This document shows positions 49,692 through 63,769 of a stretch of 64,000 bases of DNA, in pieces (position 1 is the stretch's first letter; each line of letters starts with the position of its first letter). The DNA comes from Rebecca billardiae RCC1528 (Eukaryota; Protista; Haptophyta). Under the pieces are notes generated by a model. The model did not search any database. It saw only the letters and a program-made list of their open reading frames with translations, and was not told the DNA's origin. The translations under genes were made by a program, and so were the position numbers. The stretch covers positions 186,001 through 250,000 of the forward strand of contig OZ251245.1 of NCBI GenBank assembly GCA_965240325.2, in the 5' to 3' direction.

Positions 49692-50829
49692 GATGCTGGC
49701 GAAGACGACGAGATTCACGGACCGCTGCGGGATCGGTCCTTGATTCATCACGCTGGTTCTCGTTGGGCACGACGCAATTTTCAATTTGCGCCCAGCCGGC
49801 GCCTCGCGTCCGCCCCGTGCATCCAGCGCGCTCGAAGAGGACACCGGAGCAAAATCCGAATCAGAAGAGCGGCTCCCCCTGGCCATGCGGTCCTGGACAC
49901 GCGCACTTCGCGCTTATTTTTGTGATTTTCTGTTTGGACGTGGCAGAATAGCTTCTTATTTATTCGTGGTATGCAACGGGCAGGCGTCAGGCTGAGTGCA
50001 GCAGACACATAGATTGCGTCCGCGCCTTCCGACCAGGTCAGGCAGTGCGCCACCCGCAGCCCTGCCCCCCCTACGGGAGCGGCGGGGCCGGGATGGAGCA
50101 CCGTCGCCTCGGCCTGGGCCTGGGGCTGGGGCACGCGGCGGCCGGACGGCAGATGCTGCCGCGGCCCGGAGCGCCGCTTCCGGAGCACTTGGATGAGGGT
50201 GAGGTCGTAGTCGATGTCGCCGCCCGCCGACCTAGCGGCGAGCCGGCTGCGGAAGGCCGGAAGGCGACAGCTGCGGCTGTCGAGTCCCCGGGCGCCCGCG
50301 TGGCCGCCTGGATGGCAGGACGAGGTCGTAGAATACGCATCATCGCCGCGCGCTGGCCTGGCGGCGCGCAGCTGCAGGAGAGGGGCCTTCGTCAGGAGAG
50401 AATGAGTGCGTCGCCTAGTGCGCTCTGGGCGATGAAGCGGATGAGGTTGTAGTCGATGTCGTAGCCCGGCCCGCGGGCGGGCTGCTGCACGGATGCGCAG
50501 TGCTTGATGGAATGATGCTGCCAGGGAACCCGCCCCCCGGGCTCGTCACACCCCGCACCACCTGCTGCCCCGGCCACCTTGTCCTTGACAGTAGCTAATG
50601 TACCGTGTACGACTAGCGTGCTCTCGCGTCTGAGGTCATATGGGCTCATGCAAACCAGTTTCCATCAGGTCTCTCTTCGGAGAGCGTGCGATGAAGGATG
50701 GCGCGGCAAACTGCCAACGTGAGCCTCGATCGCGCACGTTATAACAATAATATACATAATAAACTGTACCTAGGGTGGAGCCTATATATATAGAGAGAGA
50801 GAGAGATAATAAATGTGATTTTAAACCAT

Positions 50830-50831
<2 letters not shown>

Positions 50832-50909
<78 letters not shown>
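50832..50909. repeat. (TA)n microsatellite
   Basis: Pure TA run of about 78 nt. Confidence 0.95.
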
Positions 50910-50911
<2 letters not shown>

Positions 50912-51088
50912 GAGACTAGTAAGGTCAAAGACACTCCGAAAGCATTGACAGGTGCAGTTGCATGCTCTGACGATGACGTTGTCGTCTCGCACTGGCAAGA
51001 CAGCGTCTGGCGTCCTGCTCATCGTCAGTCCGTCAGCTCGCACGATGGGGCCCCATACGTCCAGCATGGTCACTGCCGTCACGGTCCA

Positions 51089-54735: not shown

Positions 54736-55271
54736 CACCCGCCTCACGGAGAATGCCAGATTCCCAGCATTCCGGTGGCGCGCGACGACGAGCGCGTGTT
54801 CGAGCGCTACTATGCGGCGGTGTGACGCCGTTTGACAGGGCATGGTGCCTCCAGTCAGTGCACCGGACGCGCCTGAGTTTAAGATTGCTGGGCAATCGTC
54901 ACTTTACGAGCCGAGGCTTGGCGCAGGCTAATGGTGCTAACCGCGCACATCGGCACATGATGACTTGGTGGAAGGTGCGCGACATGTGACGGTGCGTGAT
55001 GATGAGGGGTTGCCACGCCTTCAGCCTTCTACCTATAAGTAGGACACTGCGGATGGGACCGTCGGATGGCTCGGATGCGACCAGAGAAAAGCGACACTGG
55101 CCGCGCCGGACGCACGGTTTGGCGGTAAATTGGCGCTTGATGGCAAGTGCTTCCGGACATGGAACAGGAGAGGAGCGACGACGAAGCAGCCGACGGAGCA
55201 GCGCGTCATCGCGCGTCACGCCCGGGCAATAGGACGCCCGCGCCGCAGCGAAGGGCGTGGACGCGGCGGAC

Positions 55272-56138
55272 ATGTGGGCAGGCGTGTTCCCACCGACCCA
55301 CCGGGCGGTGGCAGCTGTGACGGTCATCGCCCTCGCTGCCTTCGCCGGCCCGCGCGCCGGCCGCGCACCAGCCTTGCACAGCGACGGCGCGCTCGTTGTG
55401 GGGGGTGACGCGTACGCGCTCGAGCAGCAGCTGCACGGCGCGGAGCTCGTGGCGAAGGGGCGCACGCACTTCCACGTCTTCATGATCCCCGTGTGCTCCG
55501 CCGTGCTCTACCTCGAGCCGCGCACGCCCAACCAGGCCGTGCTCTCAGACGTGCCGAAGGTCCTCGAGCTCAGCTACCACCGCTCGATCTCGGCGGCGGA
55601 GTTTGCGGGCTCCACGACGGCGACGATTGAGCGCAACGGCCTGCTGAGCGCGCACGTGCGCCCGCTCGTCGAGCGCTTCAACACGCTGTACGCCAACGTG
55701 CGCGCGGGCGACCGTTACCAGCTCTCGTACCACCCGCGACACGGCGTCTCCATCCGGCTCAACGGCGAGCTCCTGGGCAGCGTGGGCTGGCGCGACCCGG
55801 AGTTCGCCAAAGCGCTGTTCTCCGTGTGGTTTGGGGCGCGCGCCTTCCACCCCACGTTTCGGCACGATCTCATGCTGCCGATCCAGGCGCACGGCCACCA
55901 TGCTCGCAGCCGTGACTCGGCGGGTGCGCGCGCACCTGGCAAGCAGCGCAGAGCGGCGGCGGCAGCCGCTGCCACTCGCAGGCGCGACGAGCACGGCGCG
56001 GCGGCCAGCAGCGCACCTCGCCTTCCGGGCACCACTCTGCGCGCACCCGTGACGTGGGCGTCCGCGTTGAGGCAAATCTTCATGGACACCCTGGGATTGG
56101 CTACGCCCGTCGCGGGCCGCGTCCACGCGCCGGTGTGA
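55272..56138 (+). CDS. Chalcone-isomerase-like fold protein (Chalcone_3 type)
   Basis: SAVLYL..LELSYHRSI..VRAGDRYQL..LNGELLGSV..FAKALFSVWFG pattern. Confidence 0.8.
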   Translation: MWAGVFPPTHRAVAAVTVIALAAFAGPRAGRAPALHSDGALVVGGDAYALEQQLHGAELVAKGRTHFHVFMIPVCSAVLYLEPRTPNQAVLSDVPKVLELSYHRSISAAEFAGSTTATIERNGLLSAHVRPLVERFNTLYANVRAGDRYQLSYHPRHGVSIRLNGELLGSVGWRDPEFAKALFSVWFGARAFHPTFRHDLMLPIQAHGHHARSRDSAGARAPGKQRRAAAAAAATRRRDEHGAAASSAPRLPGTTLRAPVTWASALRQIFMDTLGLATPVAGRVHAPV

Positions 56139-56346: not shown

Positions 56347-59300
56347 CTACACGCCCTGCCGCCGCGGCTTCAGCTCCCTGACCGCGCCGACGACGAGCGG
56401 CAGCAGCTCGCGCACCTTGTGATTGAAGGTGCGCACGCTCGCCGCCTCGACCATCGCGAGCAGCACCGAGTTGAGCGCCGCGTCGGGCGGGCGCCGGCCG
56501 ACGGCGAGCGTCACGTGGAAGGCGTCGATCGCCGCGACCACCGACTGCGCCTCGGCGGCGTCGCTGACGGCGAGGTGGACGTCAATGTCCTCGAGCCGAC
56601 CGCCGAGCAGCAGCCAGAGAAAGCAGAGGGTCGCCGCCAGGAAGTCGTCGAAGAGGTTGACGCCGGCGAGCAGCACGAGGCGCTCGCACTTGGCGAGGTG
56701 CACGATCGCGTGCTTGGCGTGCTCGAGCGCCGACGCGTTGGGCGAGCACACCGGCGGCAGGTACACCGTGGACGGCTTGCCGGTGGCGGCGGTGCGCGCG
56801 CGCAGCCACTCGCCCAGCGCGCGCGCCTGCTCGCGCGGGTGGTCGAGCACCGACGTGACGACAAACGCCTCCGCCCTCTGCGCGGGCTCGGGCACGAGCG
56901 ACGGCCGCGCCGGGCTGATCGCGTGGCGCTGCGCGTGCAGCCCGAGCGACGCGCGGTCGGCCAGCGCCGACTGGAGCTCCGCCTGGTCGAGCGTGCGCGC
57001 TTCGAGCGTGAGCGCGCGGAAGGAGCCCATCGCGCTCGCGACGAGCTCGCGCGGGTCCGCCGCGCCGGCGAGCGAGCCGTACCCCGCAAACGGCGCGAGC
57101 GCGGTGTCGAGGCCGGTGGAGCCGGCGAGCGCGCCCAGCCACGCCTGCAGCCGCAGCCGGCTGCCCGGCGCGAGCACGACCGCTGTGAGTGCCACGTTGA
57201 GAATCGTGAGCACGGCGAGGACGGCGAGGAACCAGTCGACGAGCGCGCCGGCGCCGAGCGCGTCCGCGCGCGCCCAGTTCACGAACGACGCGACCCGTTG
57301 GAGCATCGCGAGCGCGATGATCACGGCGGTGATCTGCCACGTGTGCTTGAGCAGCCGCGCGGGCACGCGCCAGTTGCGCGCGATCGAGTAGAAGAATGCG
57401 CAGAGGCACACGGCGCGGATCCCGACAGAGAGGCCGAGCCGGCCGGCGAACCAGCCGACCGCGTCGTCGCCCAGGTGGCTGTACTCGGCTGGGGCTGGAC
57501 GGCTACCGGCCAGCGCCTCGAGCATCTGCAGCAGGTTCAGCACCATCACGATCGTGAAGAGCAGCCCGTACGTGAGCGCGAGCGCGCGGATGCGCACGAT
57601 CTCGGCCGGCGTCGGGTGGAGGGCGAGCAGCAGCACAGCGAGCGCGACGTACACGAGCAGGAGCAGCACCTGCTCGTTCAGCGCGACGATCACGCCGGCC
57701 GAGGCGTCCCCGCCGGCGAGCGAGAAGCCGAAGAGGCCGGTCGCGAGCGAGTACGCGAGCAGCAGGAAGAGCAGCAGCAGCGTGATACTCATGATGTACT
57801 TGCCCACGCGCCGGTGCACGCGGCGCGCGTCGGAGAGAGATTGCTCCATGATCGCGCTGAGCTCCGCGTCGCTCATCGGCTGCAGCGTGAGCTGCCCCGC
57901 GTCGGGCGCGGCGGTGAAGCGGCGCGGGTACGGCTGGAACTGGACGCGCTCCGGCATGCCAAAGTCGCGCTTGGCGAGCGCGCGCGCGCGCCGGCTGCTC
58001 GGGCGCGCGCCCCGCGCGGACGCGGGCGGCGCGGCGGGCTCAGACCGCGCGGCGCTGGCGCGCGCCGTGTGCATGACCACCTGATGGAACGTGTCGCTGC
58101 GCGCGCGCCGGGGGCAGCGCGCGGGCGAGGGGGTAGCGCGCGGCGCGGGGCGCGGCGGCGCGAGGCGTGCGCGTGAGTGAGTGCGCAGCGGCGCGCCCGC
58201 GTGCCACGAGGGGTGCGTGTGCCGAGTGGCGGGCCGAGGGCGCGGCATGCCACAGGCGCAGTGCGCGCGCGCGCTCTTGCGCACGCCGCGCAGAGTGCGC
58301 AGCGCGGCGGTGGGCCCCGGCGGGCCCCTGTGCCGCGCGCCCCGGGGCATGCACGCGCGCGCGCGCAACCAAATAATGGGCAGGCATCCGAAAACAAGGA
58401 GCACTTTTCGCCATTCATTTCCCATGATTCAAAAAGCCGTTTTTGTGGACGCGCGCGCGCGCACCGCAGCAGGTTCACGACGTGAGCAATGTCGATGGCG
58501 TGCTCAGCCTCGAGCAGAAGCAGGTGCTCCGTGCCGCCCACCGGCGTGACCGCCGCGCGCGTGAACAGCGCCTCCGTGCTCGGCAGCGCCGCCATCAGCG
58601 TCACCACGTCATGCGGTTTGACGAACCTGCGCATCACCCGGGCGCGCGGGCGCGCGGCAGCGGGCGCGGGCGGCGGGCACGCCGCGCCGAGCCGGTGGCA
58701 GGGGCAGTGCGCGCATGAGCCGCGCGGCCGCGCGCGCGCGGCGCACCGCCCTCGCTCGCTCCCTCGAGCGTCGCTTCCAAAGTGGCCGCGCGCGTGCGCG
58801 TGCGCCTCGCCGCGCGCGCGGAGGAAGGCGGCGGTGCGCGTGCCCGGCGAGGTGCGGCTTGATGTCGTGCGACGCGCCCAGCTGCTCGAGCCGATGCTTC
58901 TTCACGCCGGCCGCGTCCACACCGCAGTACGTCTCGAAGTACCACTGCTTCGTGTACGGCGCGGGCAGCTCGGCAGCGCACAGCCGCTGCCACAGCCCCT
59001 CCAGCCCGAGGAGCTGCGCGTCCGCCAAGTAGCGCATGATCGGGCAGTCGGTGCGGCGGGCGAAGGAACTCGCCAGCTGCGGCGGCACGGGGGCGGCGCG
59101 CGGGCGTCGTGCGCCGGCAGAGGCGGCGGCGCGGGGGCCGGGCGCGAGAGGGGCGCGACACAGGGAGAGCGTCAGCTGGAGCAGCGGGGCGCGGCGCGCG
59201 CGCGCGGGGGACGGACGCTCGGGCGCGCGGACCGCCCGCGCAGCAGTGCTGCACGCGGCAAGCCCGGCCGGGCTGGCTGGCTGACGGCGCGCAACGCGCC

Positions 59301-60075
59301 GTGGCACAGCACCGCAGGGACACTCGGCCACCCCCAGCGCCAGCCCCACCCCACGCGACGCCCGCACCTGCGTGGGCAGCAGCGGCACGCTTTGGCCGGA
59401 CACGACGATCAGCGGCAGCTCGCGCGAGAAGCAGAAGTCGTACACCGCCGCCGCCGCCTCGCGATCGAGCTCGTTCCGCATCGCCGAGTCCGGCGCCCAG
59501 CCGAACCGCGCCGACACGTCCGCTCGGAGGCCACCGCTCGCGGCGACGAGCGCAACCTTCCGCTGCAGCAGCTCGGCGTGCGCGGCGCAGAGCTCGGCGA
59601 GGTCGCGGAAGGAGGCGAGCACGACGACGCGGAGGCTCTTCGAGCGCGCGGCGCGCAGCGTGCGCAGCAGCACCGCGCCGCCGCTCTCGAACGTGTCGCC
59701 CGCTGTCGCGTCGTAGCCCTCGAGGGCGAACTCGTTCTCGCGCGCGCGCTCGGCGCGCGCCGCGGTCGATCCGACGGCGACGGGCACGTTGTCCACGCCG
59801 ACGTGAGCGAGTAGCGCGCGCGCGAGACGCGCACGCGCCCGCACGTCCTCGCCGCCCGAGCAGATCACCGCGCACAGCCTGATCCGGCGGCGCCGGTGCA
59901 GCGTGGCCGCGATCAGCAGGGCCTGCGCCGCGCCCGCGTCGGGCCCAGGCGCGCAGATGAGCACGAAGGGCGGGCGGGTCGCAGCGCCGTCGTTCTTGAG
60001 GAGGGTGTGGGTCCCCGTGGTCTCCACCATCGACGGGTCCGACGCCGGCAGCATCACGTGCGGGGCGGGGGCCAT
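56347..60075 (-). CDS. Nucleoside-hydrolase-like + 6TM + TIR-like fusion protein (~950 aa)
   Basis: Exons 60075-59368, 59076-58844, 58626-58465, 58096-56347 (2853 nt, in frame; second intron GC-AG). Domain motifs are given in the findings. Confidence 0.7.
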
Positions 60076-60964
60076 TTCGCGCGCGGCAACAAGCGCGGGT
60101 GGTCGCAAAACGTGATCGTGATGATTTCAGATTCGCAAAGGCCTGATGATGAATTGATGATGCGCCAGCGGAACGCCCTGTGATTTCTGTGAAGCGGTAC
60201 GCGCGTATTCACCCGCATCATTTTTAGCCAATCACTCCGCGCCCGCGAGCGATCTTTTTTTCAATCTCAGAGGCCCGGCCTGTGTGGAGGCTCACCATTG
60301 GCTGGATGCGGACGCGTCGGTCGCAAGAAGTTGATGCCCCTCTCGAGAATTCAGAGTTCGGAGCGCGGGAAAACCCATTTAGTTTCTTGATTCTACTAGT
60401 ACTATGATCAATGAAAAGGTACAGTGAACATTCCATGTAAAATACGGTGAAGTGCGACGGCTCAAAGAACCTTCAGGAGTGCATTCTGGTGAGCGATTTT
60501 CTTTTTGAACTGATATTACGACTCAAAAAACCACCCGGCACGAACCTTTCGACGGCTCAAAGAACCTTCAGGAGTGGCATCTTGCTCAGGGGCGTTCCCC
60601 GCATCGGTCATACGCCAAATTGAACCGTCTTCCTATTGGAACGGGCTTCGTCCATTTGAAGCGGGTACATTGAATACGAAAAAAGGCAAAGCCCCCCCAG
60701 GGGGGGCTTTGCTTTTCGGGAGCGTGTGGCAGGATCCCGGGAACGCCCTTGCAAACGCACATTCGCGTTTTGGAAAAGTTTGTGCATCCGATATACCCCC
60801 ATATTGTGTGACAATGACTGATGATGACGAAGATTCCATCATGATGACAGAAATCAGAATCCAGTCGACCCGCGAGACGGTCGGGGAGCCGGGCCGGCTG
60901 CGTCAGTGCGTGGGCGGTAGCACTCAGCGGCACGCCCGCTGTGGTGGGCCCCAGCCCTCACCGC

Positions 60965-63769
60965 TCACGCCGGTGCTCCCGCCTCGCTCTCCGCTTTGGC
61001 GGCCTTGGCCGGCGGCGCGCCCGTGCCCGCCGCGTCCGACGGCCGCTTCGCCGCGCCGGACCGGCCCGACGGGTTCGTGCCGGACACCTCCGCCACCACG
61101 ATCCGGATGAGCAGGTCGACGCGGCGCGCGAGCTCCTGCGGCGTGCGCGACTTGAAGATCCAGTCGAAACGAAACTCGGGGTTGCGACGGATCTCGCGCT
61201 TAAGCTCGTCCCACTGCGGCGCCGCGGGCGGCGGGCGCGGCGGCGGGCGCGGCGCGCGCGTGAGCGGCGCGGCGCGGAGCCAGCCCGCCCTGGAAGCAGC
61301 GCGCTGCGGCGCGCAGGCAGCGCATGCGGCCGGCGCCCCCGCGCGGCCGGCTGGCTGAGCGCGCACACACACGCACACGCACACACGCACACGCGCGCAC
61401 ACACGCACACGCGCGCACACACGCACACGCACACACACACGCGCGCACACACAGGCACACGCGCACACACATGCACACACACAGACACGCACGCACACAG
61501 ACACGCGCGCGCACACACACAGACACACGCACACACACACACACACACGCGCGCGCGCACACACGCACACACACACAGACACGCACACACACACGCACAC
61601 ACGCGCGCGCACACACGCGCACACACACAGACACACGCACACACACAGACACACACGCGCGCGCACACGCACACACACACAGACACGCACACACACCTGG
61701 CCGTAGCCCAGCTTGTCTGTCATGCAGAGCAGGAAGCGGTCCTCCTCCTCGTTGAAGATCTTGCCGCGCGCCGACGAGCCGTACTTGATCTGCAGCTGCT
61801 GCCACGGGTTGTCGTACTTTGCGATCTTGGCGCGCAGGGCCTCCTGCATCTCCTCGCGCTGCGCAAGCTTCTTCTCGCCTGCGAGCGCGCGCGGCGCGCG
61901 GTGCGGTGCAGATGGCGCGCGGGCGCGGCGCGTGGGCGCAGCGCCGCGCGAGGCGAGGGCAGTGGCGTGGCCAGCGGGGCAGGGTGAGCGGCGGCGGTGC
62001 GTGCGCGCACGGCCGCGCGCGTGCGCGACCCCAACCGAGGGCCGCCGCGCACGCAGGCTGCCCGCCCTGCGCGCCGCGCGCCGCCCGCGCACACACGAGG
62101 TGCTCACAGCTCGCGAGCGCACCGCCGCGCGCCGGCACCGCCGCGCCGCCCGCGCAGCCGCGCGGCCGCGCAGCGGCCGCGCAGCCTGGCCGCAGAAGTA
62201 GCTGGGCCTGACCGACGCGGGCGGCTGCTGGCACATGCACGTGGCTTATGCCTGAGACACGTGTATTTGCCACCACCCCTGGGGGAGCCAATGACCGCGC
62301 GGCCGCGCAGCGCGCGCACCATCGGCGATGCGCTTCTCAATCTTCTCCCAGTCGGGCAGCATCGTGGGCCCGCGCTCGAACAGCGCGTCGCGGTACGCGC
62401 GCACCTCCTCCAGCGACTTGCCCTCCACCTGCATACCCACAATAAACATGAACATAGAATCGGCATATCATAAATAGCGGGCACAGGCGCGCGCGCGGTC
62501 GCGGGCGCGGGCGCGGCGCGGCGTGAGGCGGAGGGGACAGGGGCGGCGCGGGCGCGCGCGCGCCAACGGCCAAGCCGGAAGGCGCGCGCGCCGGCCGGCC
62601 AGCGCGCGCGCGCTCGCGCGCCGCCGGCCGCGCGTGGGCGCGCCTTGCGCGCGCCAGCCCGCGGCGAGCCGCGCCGCGATGCGCCGCGCGGCGCCGCGCC
62701 AACGCGCCCACGCGCGCCGGCAACGACCACCGCACCTCCTTAGCGATGCGCTCCACGTCTCGCCTGCCAAATCGCTCGGCCGCGCGGCAGAAGCGGTTGA
62801 AGTCGGTGCGGCTCCAGCCGGGGAAGCCCTCGTCGAGCAGCCGGCGGCGCTCCTCCTCCTCCTCCGGCGGCAGCAGCGGCCCCTGCTCCGCCTCCGCCGC
62901 CGCGTCGGCCGCGCTCGCCGAGCCGCCCGCGGCGCGCTTGGCGCGCGCCGTCTCCAGCTCATGTTCGCGCACGAACAGCGCTTGGATGCGCGGCGCGTCG
63001 TAGAGCTGAAAGTCTCGCATCTCGGGCATCTTGCGCATCTTGGGCAGCTTGGGCGCGGCCGCGAGCGCGGAGAGCTGGCCGAAGTTGCGCGGCTCGCGCT
63101 CGTTGTACACGGCGGTGGTGCGCTCGCGCTTCCCCATCGCGTCGTTCATCGCCGCGACGAACTCGAGGTCCGTCGAGCCGCCGCCGCGCTCGCGCGAGTA
63201 GTCGACGCCGTCAAACTGCGTGTACGCAAACTCGGCTGAGGAGAAGTCGAGCATGCCCTTCTTGTCCTTGTCGGTGAGCTTGGAGCGCTCGGAGGTGAGG
63301 TCCTTGCCGCGCGAGAGGATCGCCTCGATGTCCTCGTCCGTCACCGCGTGGTCGGACGCCTTGAAGATCTTGTCCGCGCCGTACCGGATGGCGTGCAGCG
63401 CGTCCTCCTTGGTCATCGCCTGAGGCCCCCCCAAAAAAATAAATAAATGGAAAGAAAAAGCCCAAACAAGAATCATGAAAGGGCGCGGGCGTGGGGCGCG
63501 TGCTGCGCGTGAGCGGGCGCGCGCGCGGCGGAGCGCGCACGCGCACGGGCCGTCGGCGCACGCGCCGTCCAAGGTGCGCGCGTGCGTGCGCGCGCCTTGG
63601 ATTTGTCCGCGAGCCTGCCCGACTGGATCACGGCCGCGTCCATTCGCAGCTTGAGCTCGGCGCGCTCGATCATCTTCTCCTCGATCGAGTCGGCGACCAT
63701 CAGCCGGTACACGTTGACCTGCCGCTTCTGCCCGATGCGGTGCGCGCGGTCCTGCGCCTGCAGGTCGGC
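60965..63769 (-). CDS. ISWI: ISWI chromatin-remodelling ATPase, 3' part (continues beyond the window)
   Basis: Exons 63769-63596, 63419-62736, 62428-62320, 61878-61697, 61213-60965. [13 protein letters not shown] (helicase motif VI); [19 protein letters not shown]; [30 protein letters not shown]. Confidence 0.96.
61362..61696. repeat. Compound (CA)/(CG) intronic microsatellite
   Basis: CACACG/CACAGA-type repeats in ISWI intron 61214-61696. Confidence 0.9.

Follow-up and report, generated by a model that had tools for sequence, protein, structure and literature searches.

What does a haptophyte do with a membrane protein that joins a nucleoside-hydrolase-like domain to a TIR-like domain when the copy in hand has lost most of the catalytic residues of both? 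This question is raised by a gene on the minus strand (positions 56347-60075) of a 64,000-nucleotide stretch of Rebecca billardiae RCC1528 DNA (assembly GCA_965240325.2, contig OZ251245.1, positions 186,001 to 250,000), which we refer to as the window. An earlier note on this DNA had proposed that three open reading frames (ORFs) splice into a 950-residue protein with a nucleoside hydrolase (NH)-like part, six transmembrane helices, and a TIR-like module, and that the protein is a pseudo-enzyme sensor. Our comparison of homologues, base composition, and predicted structures indicates that the locus is one four-exon gene for a 950-residue polytopic membrane protein, with a XopQ/HopQ1-type NH domain and a C-terminal domain of TIR fold, and that the encoded protein is a divergent, degenerate member of a large, expanded, and uncharacterized pavlovophyte family. 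We tentatively favor a role as a noncatalytic paralogue that regulates or adapts other members.

The four exons (708, 233, 162, and 1747 nt; Table 1) sum to 2850 nt, or 950 codons, and translate with zero internal stops. The translation confirmed the motifs quoted in the earlier note (CAPGPDAGA, CSGG, AMRNELD, KPHDV, AFVVTS, VYLPPVC, LVLLAG, and FLAATLCFLW). The claim of a single spliced gene of 950 codons held up, with homologues that are contiguous over all of its parts, and the count of three ORFs gave way to four exons; the first of those ORFs holds both exon 1 and exon 2, with the in-frame, open intron 1 between them. The splice model was based on homology and composition. Codon periodicity was strong in the exons and had the signature typical of this genome, with a GC content of 0.89-0.96 at third codon positions (GC3; 0.94, 0.95, and 0.96 for exons 1, 2, and 4, respectively) and 0.38-0.55 at second positions (GC2), or 0.95 vs. 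0.50 for the four exons jointly. The introns had none, with a GC content of 0.70-0.90 at every codon position. Intron 1 was also considered as retained coding sequence, and this was rejected because it has no codon periodicity (0.88/0.78/0.82) and its site carries zero insertions among about 20 homologues, in which the matches to exon 1 and exon 2 abut exactly. The pieces matching exons 2 and 3 are separated in the homologues by a gap of exactly four residues, as the gene model predicts, and the closing NH motif (LLRDTYHEVV in the family) spans the junction of exons 3 and 4 in the homologue alignments. Because intron 3 splits this conserved motif, exon 4 taken as an independent gene would truncate the NH domain. 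Homologous proteins that are contiguous, some of them transcript-derived, align across each of the three junctions with no gap. One RNA run compared with exon 4 gave two short related contigs with zero joints and was uninformative.

The gene region is 70-78% GC DNA with lower-GC intergenic islands on its flanks. Introns 1 and 2 have a higher GC content (0.83-0.84) than the exons have (0.68-0.75), that of intron 3 (0.75) only equals the GC-richest exon, and all three introns consist mostly of GCGC-type low-complexity sequence.

The N-terminal domain was recovered as NH-like, in agreement with the earlier note, although not as the generic inosine-uridine (IU) nucleoside hydrolase with a DxDxxxDD motif that the note had described: it is XopQ-like, and the family carries DxxxDxDD. 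Exon 1 matched the NCBIfam XopQ model NF041355 at E=1.3e-13 (50.5 bits), with homologues scoring 76-107 bits. Exon 1 and the homologues all missed the equivalog cutoff of that model (500 bits), and since their scores lie so far under it, the window protein is a homologue of XopQ and not an orthologue. The match of exon 1 to the Pfam model PF01156 (IU_nuc_hydro) was weak (26.6 bits, E=6e-6) relative to the gathering threshold of 34.2 bits, a cutoff that was passed by six of nine full-length homologues (35.7-48.1 bits). A profile built from 22 family N-termini matched the XopQ structures 4p5f, 4kl0, and 7jlu_B at E values of about 3e-41 over about 330 positions, compared with 3e-8 to 1e-2 for canonical NHs, where the match covered the N-terminal half only. 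By these comparisons the domain is of XopQ/HopQ1 type, closer over its whole length to XopQ than to canonical NHs.

XopQ and HopQ1, type III effectors of plant-pathogenic bacteria, are the closest solved relatives of the whole N-terminal domain and have the DxxxDxDD motif in common with the family. Unlike them, the window protein is eukaryotic, is not secreted, and carries a membrane bundle and a TIR-like domain in the same chain. The DxxxDxDD motif defines the HopQ1-like proteins (HLPs), which include a distinct clade in haptophytes and heterokonts (PMC6019455). The window NH domain fits the description of this algal clade, a placement made by description and not by phylogeny; the HLP paper reports no membrane or TIR fusion (the word "transmembrane" has a count of 0 in it; PMC6019455).

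In the family, the metal (Ca)-binding and catalytic motif reads TDPGPDPDD, which is the noncanonical DxxxDxDD arrangement, and the canonical DxDxxxDD is absent from both the family and the window copy. Of the 24 family members scored, 23 have all four Asp residues. The window copy departs from them: its motif is AxxxDxGA, or A(116)-x-x-x-D(120)-x-G(122)-A(123) in the XopQ numbering taken from the profile alignment, and it keeps one Asp of the four, the equivalent of XopQ D120. It also has Arg for the first Asn of NNxFD, SGG for NGG, and SGG for QGG; NNxFD keeps its second Asn, and KP(Y/H)DV (here KPHDV) keeps its Asp. At the position of XopQ Y279, most family members have Val and the window copy has Met. 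XopQ is reported to hydrolyze 2' cyclic ADP-ribose (2'cADPR), a messenger that TIR domains of plants and bacteria produce, to ADP-ribose with high specificity; point mutations of its conserved Asp residues abolish this hydrolysis, and D120N served as a catalytically inactive control (bioRxiv 10.64898/2026.06.15.732069).

Downstream of the NH domain, hydropathy identified six hydrophobic segments between residues ~472 and 676, and the AlphaFold model agrees, which bears out the six helices of the earlier note. This model, which covers the last 539 residues and was computed with an alignment of 48 sequences, had a predicted local distance difference test (pLDDT) score of 87 and a predicted template modeling (pTM) score of 0.84 and shows six long helices together with a juxtamembrane linker, which is structured, and a C-terminal domain. 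Basic residues cluster before the first helix, between helices 2 and 3 and helices 4 and 5, and after helix 6, and a signal peptide was not found. From this positive-inside pattern, both the N-terminus and the C-terminus are predicted to lie inside, so that both soluble domains would be cytosolic; the earlier note had likewise placed them on the same side of the membrane. The family conservation analysis found no conserved polar residues in the transmembrane helices, and the hallmarks of six-helix cation channels and voltage sensors (a re-entrant pore loop between helices 5 and 6, conserved charges, and a significant structural match) were absent from the bundle.

As a separate observation, the juxtamembrane LAPLLGxG...FRP motif is among the best conserved family positions within 56350-57171 of the window.

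The C-terminal domain (185 residues) was modeled by AlphaFold with a pLDDT of 92. Of the first 32 matches that Foldseek returned from the PDB, 31 were TIR domains (probability 0.8-0.99, weak E-values), including those of RPP1, RUN1, RPV1, SNC1, SARM1, MyD88, and SPARTA. The nearest structures in AlphaFold DB and the ESM Atlas (template modeling score 0.75-0.79) were haptophyte and dinoflagellate proteins with automatic names of HET or TIR; HET is regarded as a distant relative of TIR (PMC10197012). A profile search of the PDB returned sub-threshold TIR hits (TLR and SIGIRR, E 0.097-0.34) that fell exactly on the LWCV.EL segment. Neither the window protein nor 60 family members matched the Pfam TIR models (PF01582, PF13676, and relatives), apart from one TIR_2 hit at E=0.11, and none of the 60 matched Pfam HET (PF06985). 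The TIR-like module of the earlier note was thus upheld by fold and by motif but not by the Pfam TIR models, and the assignment therefore applies to fold and motif only. On the predicted model, the domain has a flavodoxin-like TIR fold, of the HET/TIR-like kind seen in protists, to which a conserved helical extension is added.

The family consensus of this domain includes AD.YVVHS, VWLD.LCD, LLLLAGP, and LWCV.ELY.W, for which the window copy has AFVVTS and VYLPPVCS in place of the first two and FLAATLCFLW in place of the last. The position of the catalytic Glu of TIR domains, on the helix that follows strand C (WCxxE context), is occupied by Glu in 96 of 142 scored family members (68%). The window copy has Leu858 at this site and is also without the neighboring W and C and the Asp of WLD. 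Together with the three missing Asp residues of the NH motif, this agrees with the earlier statement that the Glu and most of the Asp residues are lost, here judged against the family consensus, and the same counts show that most family members have the catalytic residues still in place. The catalytic Glu is required in all characterized NAD-cleaving TIRs (PMC12489294). Compared with NAD-cleaving TIRs such as RPP1, RUN1, RPS4, SARM1, AbTir, and SPARTA, the window domain has no Pfam TIR match, adds the conserved C-terminal helical extension, and has Leu at the Glu site. The HET/TIR-like domains of protists and fungi are its best structural neighbors, with the HET label coming from automatic names only, and fungal HET domains occur in nucleotide-binding receptors with leucine-rich repeats (NLRs) or soluble proteins, unlike the window domain with its six preceding transmembrane helices.

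In the family as a whole, the best conserved positions of the TIR-like domain are Asn, Arg, Asp, and Phe residues of the C-terminal extension (AFDAFHV...FN..VR) and not the Glu (~70%).

The protein is not a singleton. With the transmembrane and C-terminal part of exon 4 as the query, an exhaustive HMMER search returned 133 representatives of clusters at E<=1e-3, many with lengths of 900-1280 residues, which places it in a large pavlovophyte family. Exon 4 matched this family at E values down to 2.5e-35, and the pieces encoded by exons 1, 2, and 3, searched separately with phmmer, reached 2.7e-54, 1.6e-27, and 3.4e-13, respectively, with exon 1 aligning to homologues over residues 31-236. At least 13 representatives carry the exon 1-3 regions contiguously and in order upstream of the part resembling exon 4. 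The three-module architecture is present in at least 24 proteins, all annotated as hypothetical. The named members are all Pavlovophyceae: Pavlovales sp. CCMP2436 (at least five), Diacronema lutheri (at least seven), and Pavlova gyrans. Transcript-derived full-length relatives marked as complete are found among MMETSP entries, including one from Pavlova gyrans. No description of a fusion of nucleoside hydrolase, transmembrane, and TIR parts was found in the literature searched, nor was a characterized protein with this architecture, as the earlier note had also stated; each domain class is known, and the architecture appears to be new.

The degenerate state is not confined to the window copy. 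In an intronless full-length relative of 1235 residues (P0098, on the genomic-type contig L002:1609-5316, plus strand, from sample SRR30872636), the Asp cluster (here LCPGESGDA) and the Glu are likewise both missing, and because it belongs to a different clade from the window copy, the doubly degenerate state has arisen more than once. On the tree of the transmembrane and TIR-like module, loss of the Glu requires about eight changes in several clades, and this recurrence fits a standing class of noncatalytic members. The branch of the window copy is long (1.16 substitutions/site) and lies inside a mostly Glu-bearing group. The two losses coincide in both of the two NH-degenerate members, vs. 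loss of Glu in 3 of 17 NH-intact members (Fisher P=0.058), so that a link between loss of the NH motif and loss of the Glu is suggestive only.

Parts of the architecture also occur elsewhere. The six-helix bundle and TIR-like domain form a cassette that is found in Emiliania, Chrysochromulina, and Symbiodinium behind a C-type lectin domain, behind HNOB, or behind nothing (AlphaFold DB entries R1DYT9, A0A0M0JWQ2, and A0A0M0K3D9, plus Atlas clusters), and this reuse suggests a modular family of membrane receptors. A word-based search of 5.8 billion clustered proteins matched exon 4 only to its own allele and returned no match for the N-terminal piece. Weak Pfam matches to ABC2_membrane_3 (E=0.45), DUF7185, and SH2_2 were treated as chance.

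The reading that we favor, at a little under an even chance, is that the window copy acts as a noncatalytic regulatory or adaptor paralogue. In typical family members, the TIR-like domain would make a NAD-derived nucleotide signal at the membrane, and the XopQ-like NH domain would read or destroy it. The window copy, being without catalysis, would pair with competent paralogues through TIR-TIR contacts, contacts of the membrane bundle, or both, and it may still bind nucleotide. We infer the signal chemistry of the family from the 2'cADPR specificity of XopQ and from the logic of type VI Thoeris, in which a TIR is coupled to a membrane effector; the pairing with paralogues and an immune role are inferred likewise. 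Type VI Thoeris has the same three ingredients, namely a TIR, a 2'cADPR-specific module, and a membrane component (ThsG). It is bacterial, however, its ingredients are separate proteins, and there is no sequence relation (the PADLOC anti-phage models matched neither the window pieces nor two full-length homologues), so the likeness is one of analogy only.

Regulation by an inactive TIR has a precedent in plants, where the inactive TIR of RRS1 regulates the active RPS4 by heterodimerization, and TIR adaptors of animals behave similarly. PDB entry 4c6t was among the structural matches of the TIR-like domain. RRS1 and RPS4 are nevertheless soluble plant NLRs whose genes are paired head to head, and a partner for the window protein is hypothetical. 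Among haptophytes, an example is offered by Gephyrocapsa huxleyi, in which proteins with several N-terminal transmembrane helices followed by a TIR domain are induced during infection by Emiliania huxleyi virus (EhV) (PMC12489294). Two proteins of E. huxleyi, R1DYT9 and R1EBV3, match the six-helix and TIR-like model over its whole extent. Unlike the window protein, the EhV-induced proteins keep the Glu and are without a XopQ-like domain.

An alternative that also dispenses with catalysis is that the protein is itself a ligand-sensing pseudo-enzyme, close to what the earlier note had proposed. The dead pockets of the NH domain, the TIR-like domain, or both would bind a NAD-derived nucleotide and thereby alter the conformation or oligomerization of the six-helix bundle, which would be the effector and act by ThsG-like membrane perturbation or by conduction. 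The residues kept in the NH domain (the D120-equivalent Asp, the second NNxFD Asn, and the KPHDV Asp) are in keeping with such a sensor, as are the predicted position of both soluble domains on one side of the membrane, the coupling in type VI Thoeris of a TIR with a 2'cADPR-activated membrane protein, and the reuse of the haptophyte cassette behind C-type lectin and HNOB. We consider this explanation possible, if unlikely.

The locus could also be a decaying paralogue, a redundant duplicate that drifts and whose frame stays open by chance in DNA of 74% GC, where stops are rare and long ORFs occur in other frames as well. The simultaneous disappearance of motif residues from both domains, the long terminal branch, and the lack of any close orthologue other than its own allele among the 5.8 billion clustered proteins would all be expected of such a copy. 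The allele of a second strain, a 575-residue protein on a Logan contig (P0001) that is 99.7% identical and colinear with the genome, speaks against it. Exon 4 differs between the strains at seven sites, of which six are synonymous and one is nonsynonymous (a conservative change of Phe to Ile), giving a ratio of nonsynonymous to synonymous polymorphism (pN/pS) of ~0.06 (binomial P=0.0023). The frame and all splice sites are intact across the 2850 nt with no frameshift, the contrast between GC3 and GC2 persists, the near-invariant structural positions of the TIR-like domain are retained, and both AlphaFold models are confident. The low pN/pS, the structural positions kept, and the intact frame and splice sites argue against a drifting pseudogene, which we regard as improbable; within this small sample, the window copy appears to be under purifying selection.

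We give still less credence to the idea that the protein remains an enzyme, with one or both domains catalyzing through substitute residues or acting on a different substrate. About one third of the family is without the Glu and yet conserved, so the activity of the family may not depend on this residue, conservation is highest within the C-terminal extension and not at the Glu, and XopQ-type enzymes were long considered inactive before the right substrate was tried. Single Asp mutations suffice to abolish XopQ activity, however, and the window copy lacks three of these residues; the loss of the Glu required in characterized NAD-cleaving TIRs is likewise accompanied by loss of the W, the C, and the WLD Asp. 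It is very improbable that the locus holds two genes, one for a soluble NH-like protein (exons 1-3) and one for a membrane-anchored TIR-like protein starting from the Met at 58074, because, although a 575-residue ORF from that Met was called on the Logan contig and standalone six-helix TIR-like proteins exist in other haptophytes, the ORF caller ignores introns, the NH motif split by intron 3 continues into exon 4, and the 13 or more representative homologues with all parts in one chain include complete transcripts.

Several points weigh against the regulatory or adaptor role all the same. Pairing with paralogues is argued by analogy, and splicing in this species is supported via homology and composition only. 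The polymorphism test comprises only seven differences, in exon 4 only. The window copy deviates at ~10 of ~33 strongly conserved positions of the TIR-like domain, and together with its long branch this could mean that constraint was relaxed in the past. Finally, since the family has Val at the position of XopQ Y279, its ligand need not be 2'cADPR.

A wider proposal, unlikely on present evidence, is that pavlovophytes run an endogenous membrane TIR circuit in which the XopQ-type domain natively reads or terminates a 2'cADPR-like messenger from the fused TIR-like domain. XopQ and HopQ1 would then be counterparts of an old eukaryotic module, and the doubly dead copies would be regulators or decoys that might titrate active paralogues or absorb interference from pathogens or viruses. 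The permanent fusion of a XopQ-type domain to a TIR-like domain, in dozens of copies within one algal class, argues that the two activities share a pathway in a free-living eukaryote. The family also provides a direct handle on TIR-type nucleotide signaling outside plants, animals, and bacteria. It further lends itself to the study of how inactive TIR and hydrolase paralogues regulate active ones, with natural members of catalytic and noncatalytic type side by side, and adds candidates to the thin list of haptophyte genes for antiviral defense or cell death. The interest lies mainly in the family, of which the window copy is a less informative, degenerate member.

Table 1. Features of the four-exon gene and its predicted protein (positions in the window).
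Feature	Position	Strand	Remarks
Exon 1	59368-60075	-	236 codons; start ATG 60075-60073; N-terminal two thirds of the XopQ/HopQ1-like NH domain
Degenerate metal/catalytic motif CAPGPDAGA	59929-59955	-	From translation and alignments; TDPGPDPDD in the family
Intron 1	59077-59367	-	291 nt; GT..AG; in frame and open; non-coding
Exon 2	58844-59076	-	Middle of the NH domain; conserved block LARSFA...MRYLA.AQ..GL.GLW..LC...LP.RCTK.W.FETFCG
Intron 2	58627-58843	-	217 nt; GC..AG (GC donor)
Exon 3	58465-58626	-	Last portion (C-terminal) of the NH domain, with KPHDV (KPYDV in the family)
Intron 3	58097-58464	-	368 nt; GT..AG; splits the last conserved NH motif (LLRDTYHEVV in the family)
Exon 4	56350-58096	-	582 codons and one split codon; encodes the NH domain's end, Ala/Arg-rich linker, six-helix bundle, juxtamembrane linker, and TIR-like domain
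Six transmembrane helices	57172-57786	-	Residues ~472-490, 511-529, 539-560, 588-606, 622-640, and 658-676
Juxtamembrane linker	56905-57171	-	Family-conserved LAPLLGxG...FRP motif (conservation analysis of the alignment)
TIR-like (HET/TIR-like) alpha/beta domain	56350-56904	-	With conserved C-terminal helical extension
Leu858 codon at the TIR catalytic Glu position	56626-56628	-	FLAATLCFLW in the window copy vs. LWCV.ELY.W in the family
Stop codon	56347-56349	-	Directly after exon 4

On either side of the gene, the window contains other coding sequence. A 293-residue ORF on the plus strand (55257-56138) is convergent with the studied gene; its counterpart on Logan contig L001 carries Pfam PF16036 (Chalcone_3), and 3 of 11 strain differences fall inside it. 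On the minus strand at 60965-62236 are coding exons resembling ISWI/SLIDE, with an intron (~61330-61700) that is almost wholly GT/CA-type microsatellite. Islands of low GC content (0.44-0.57) at 50500-51000 and 60000-61000, within DNA of 65-80% GC, coincide with intergenic or promoter regions.

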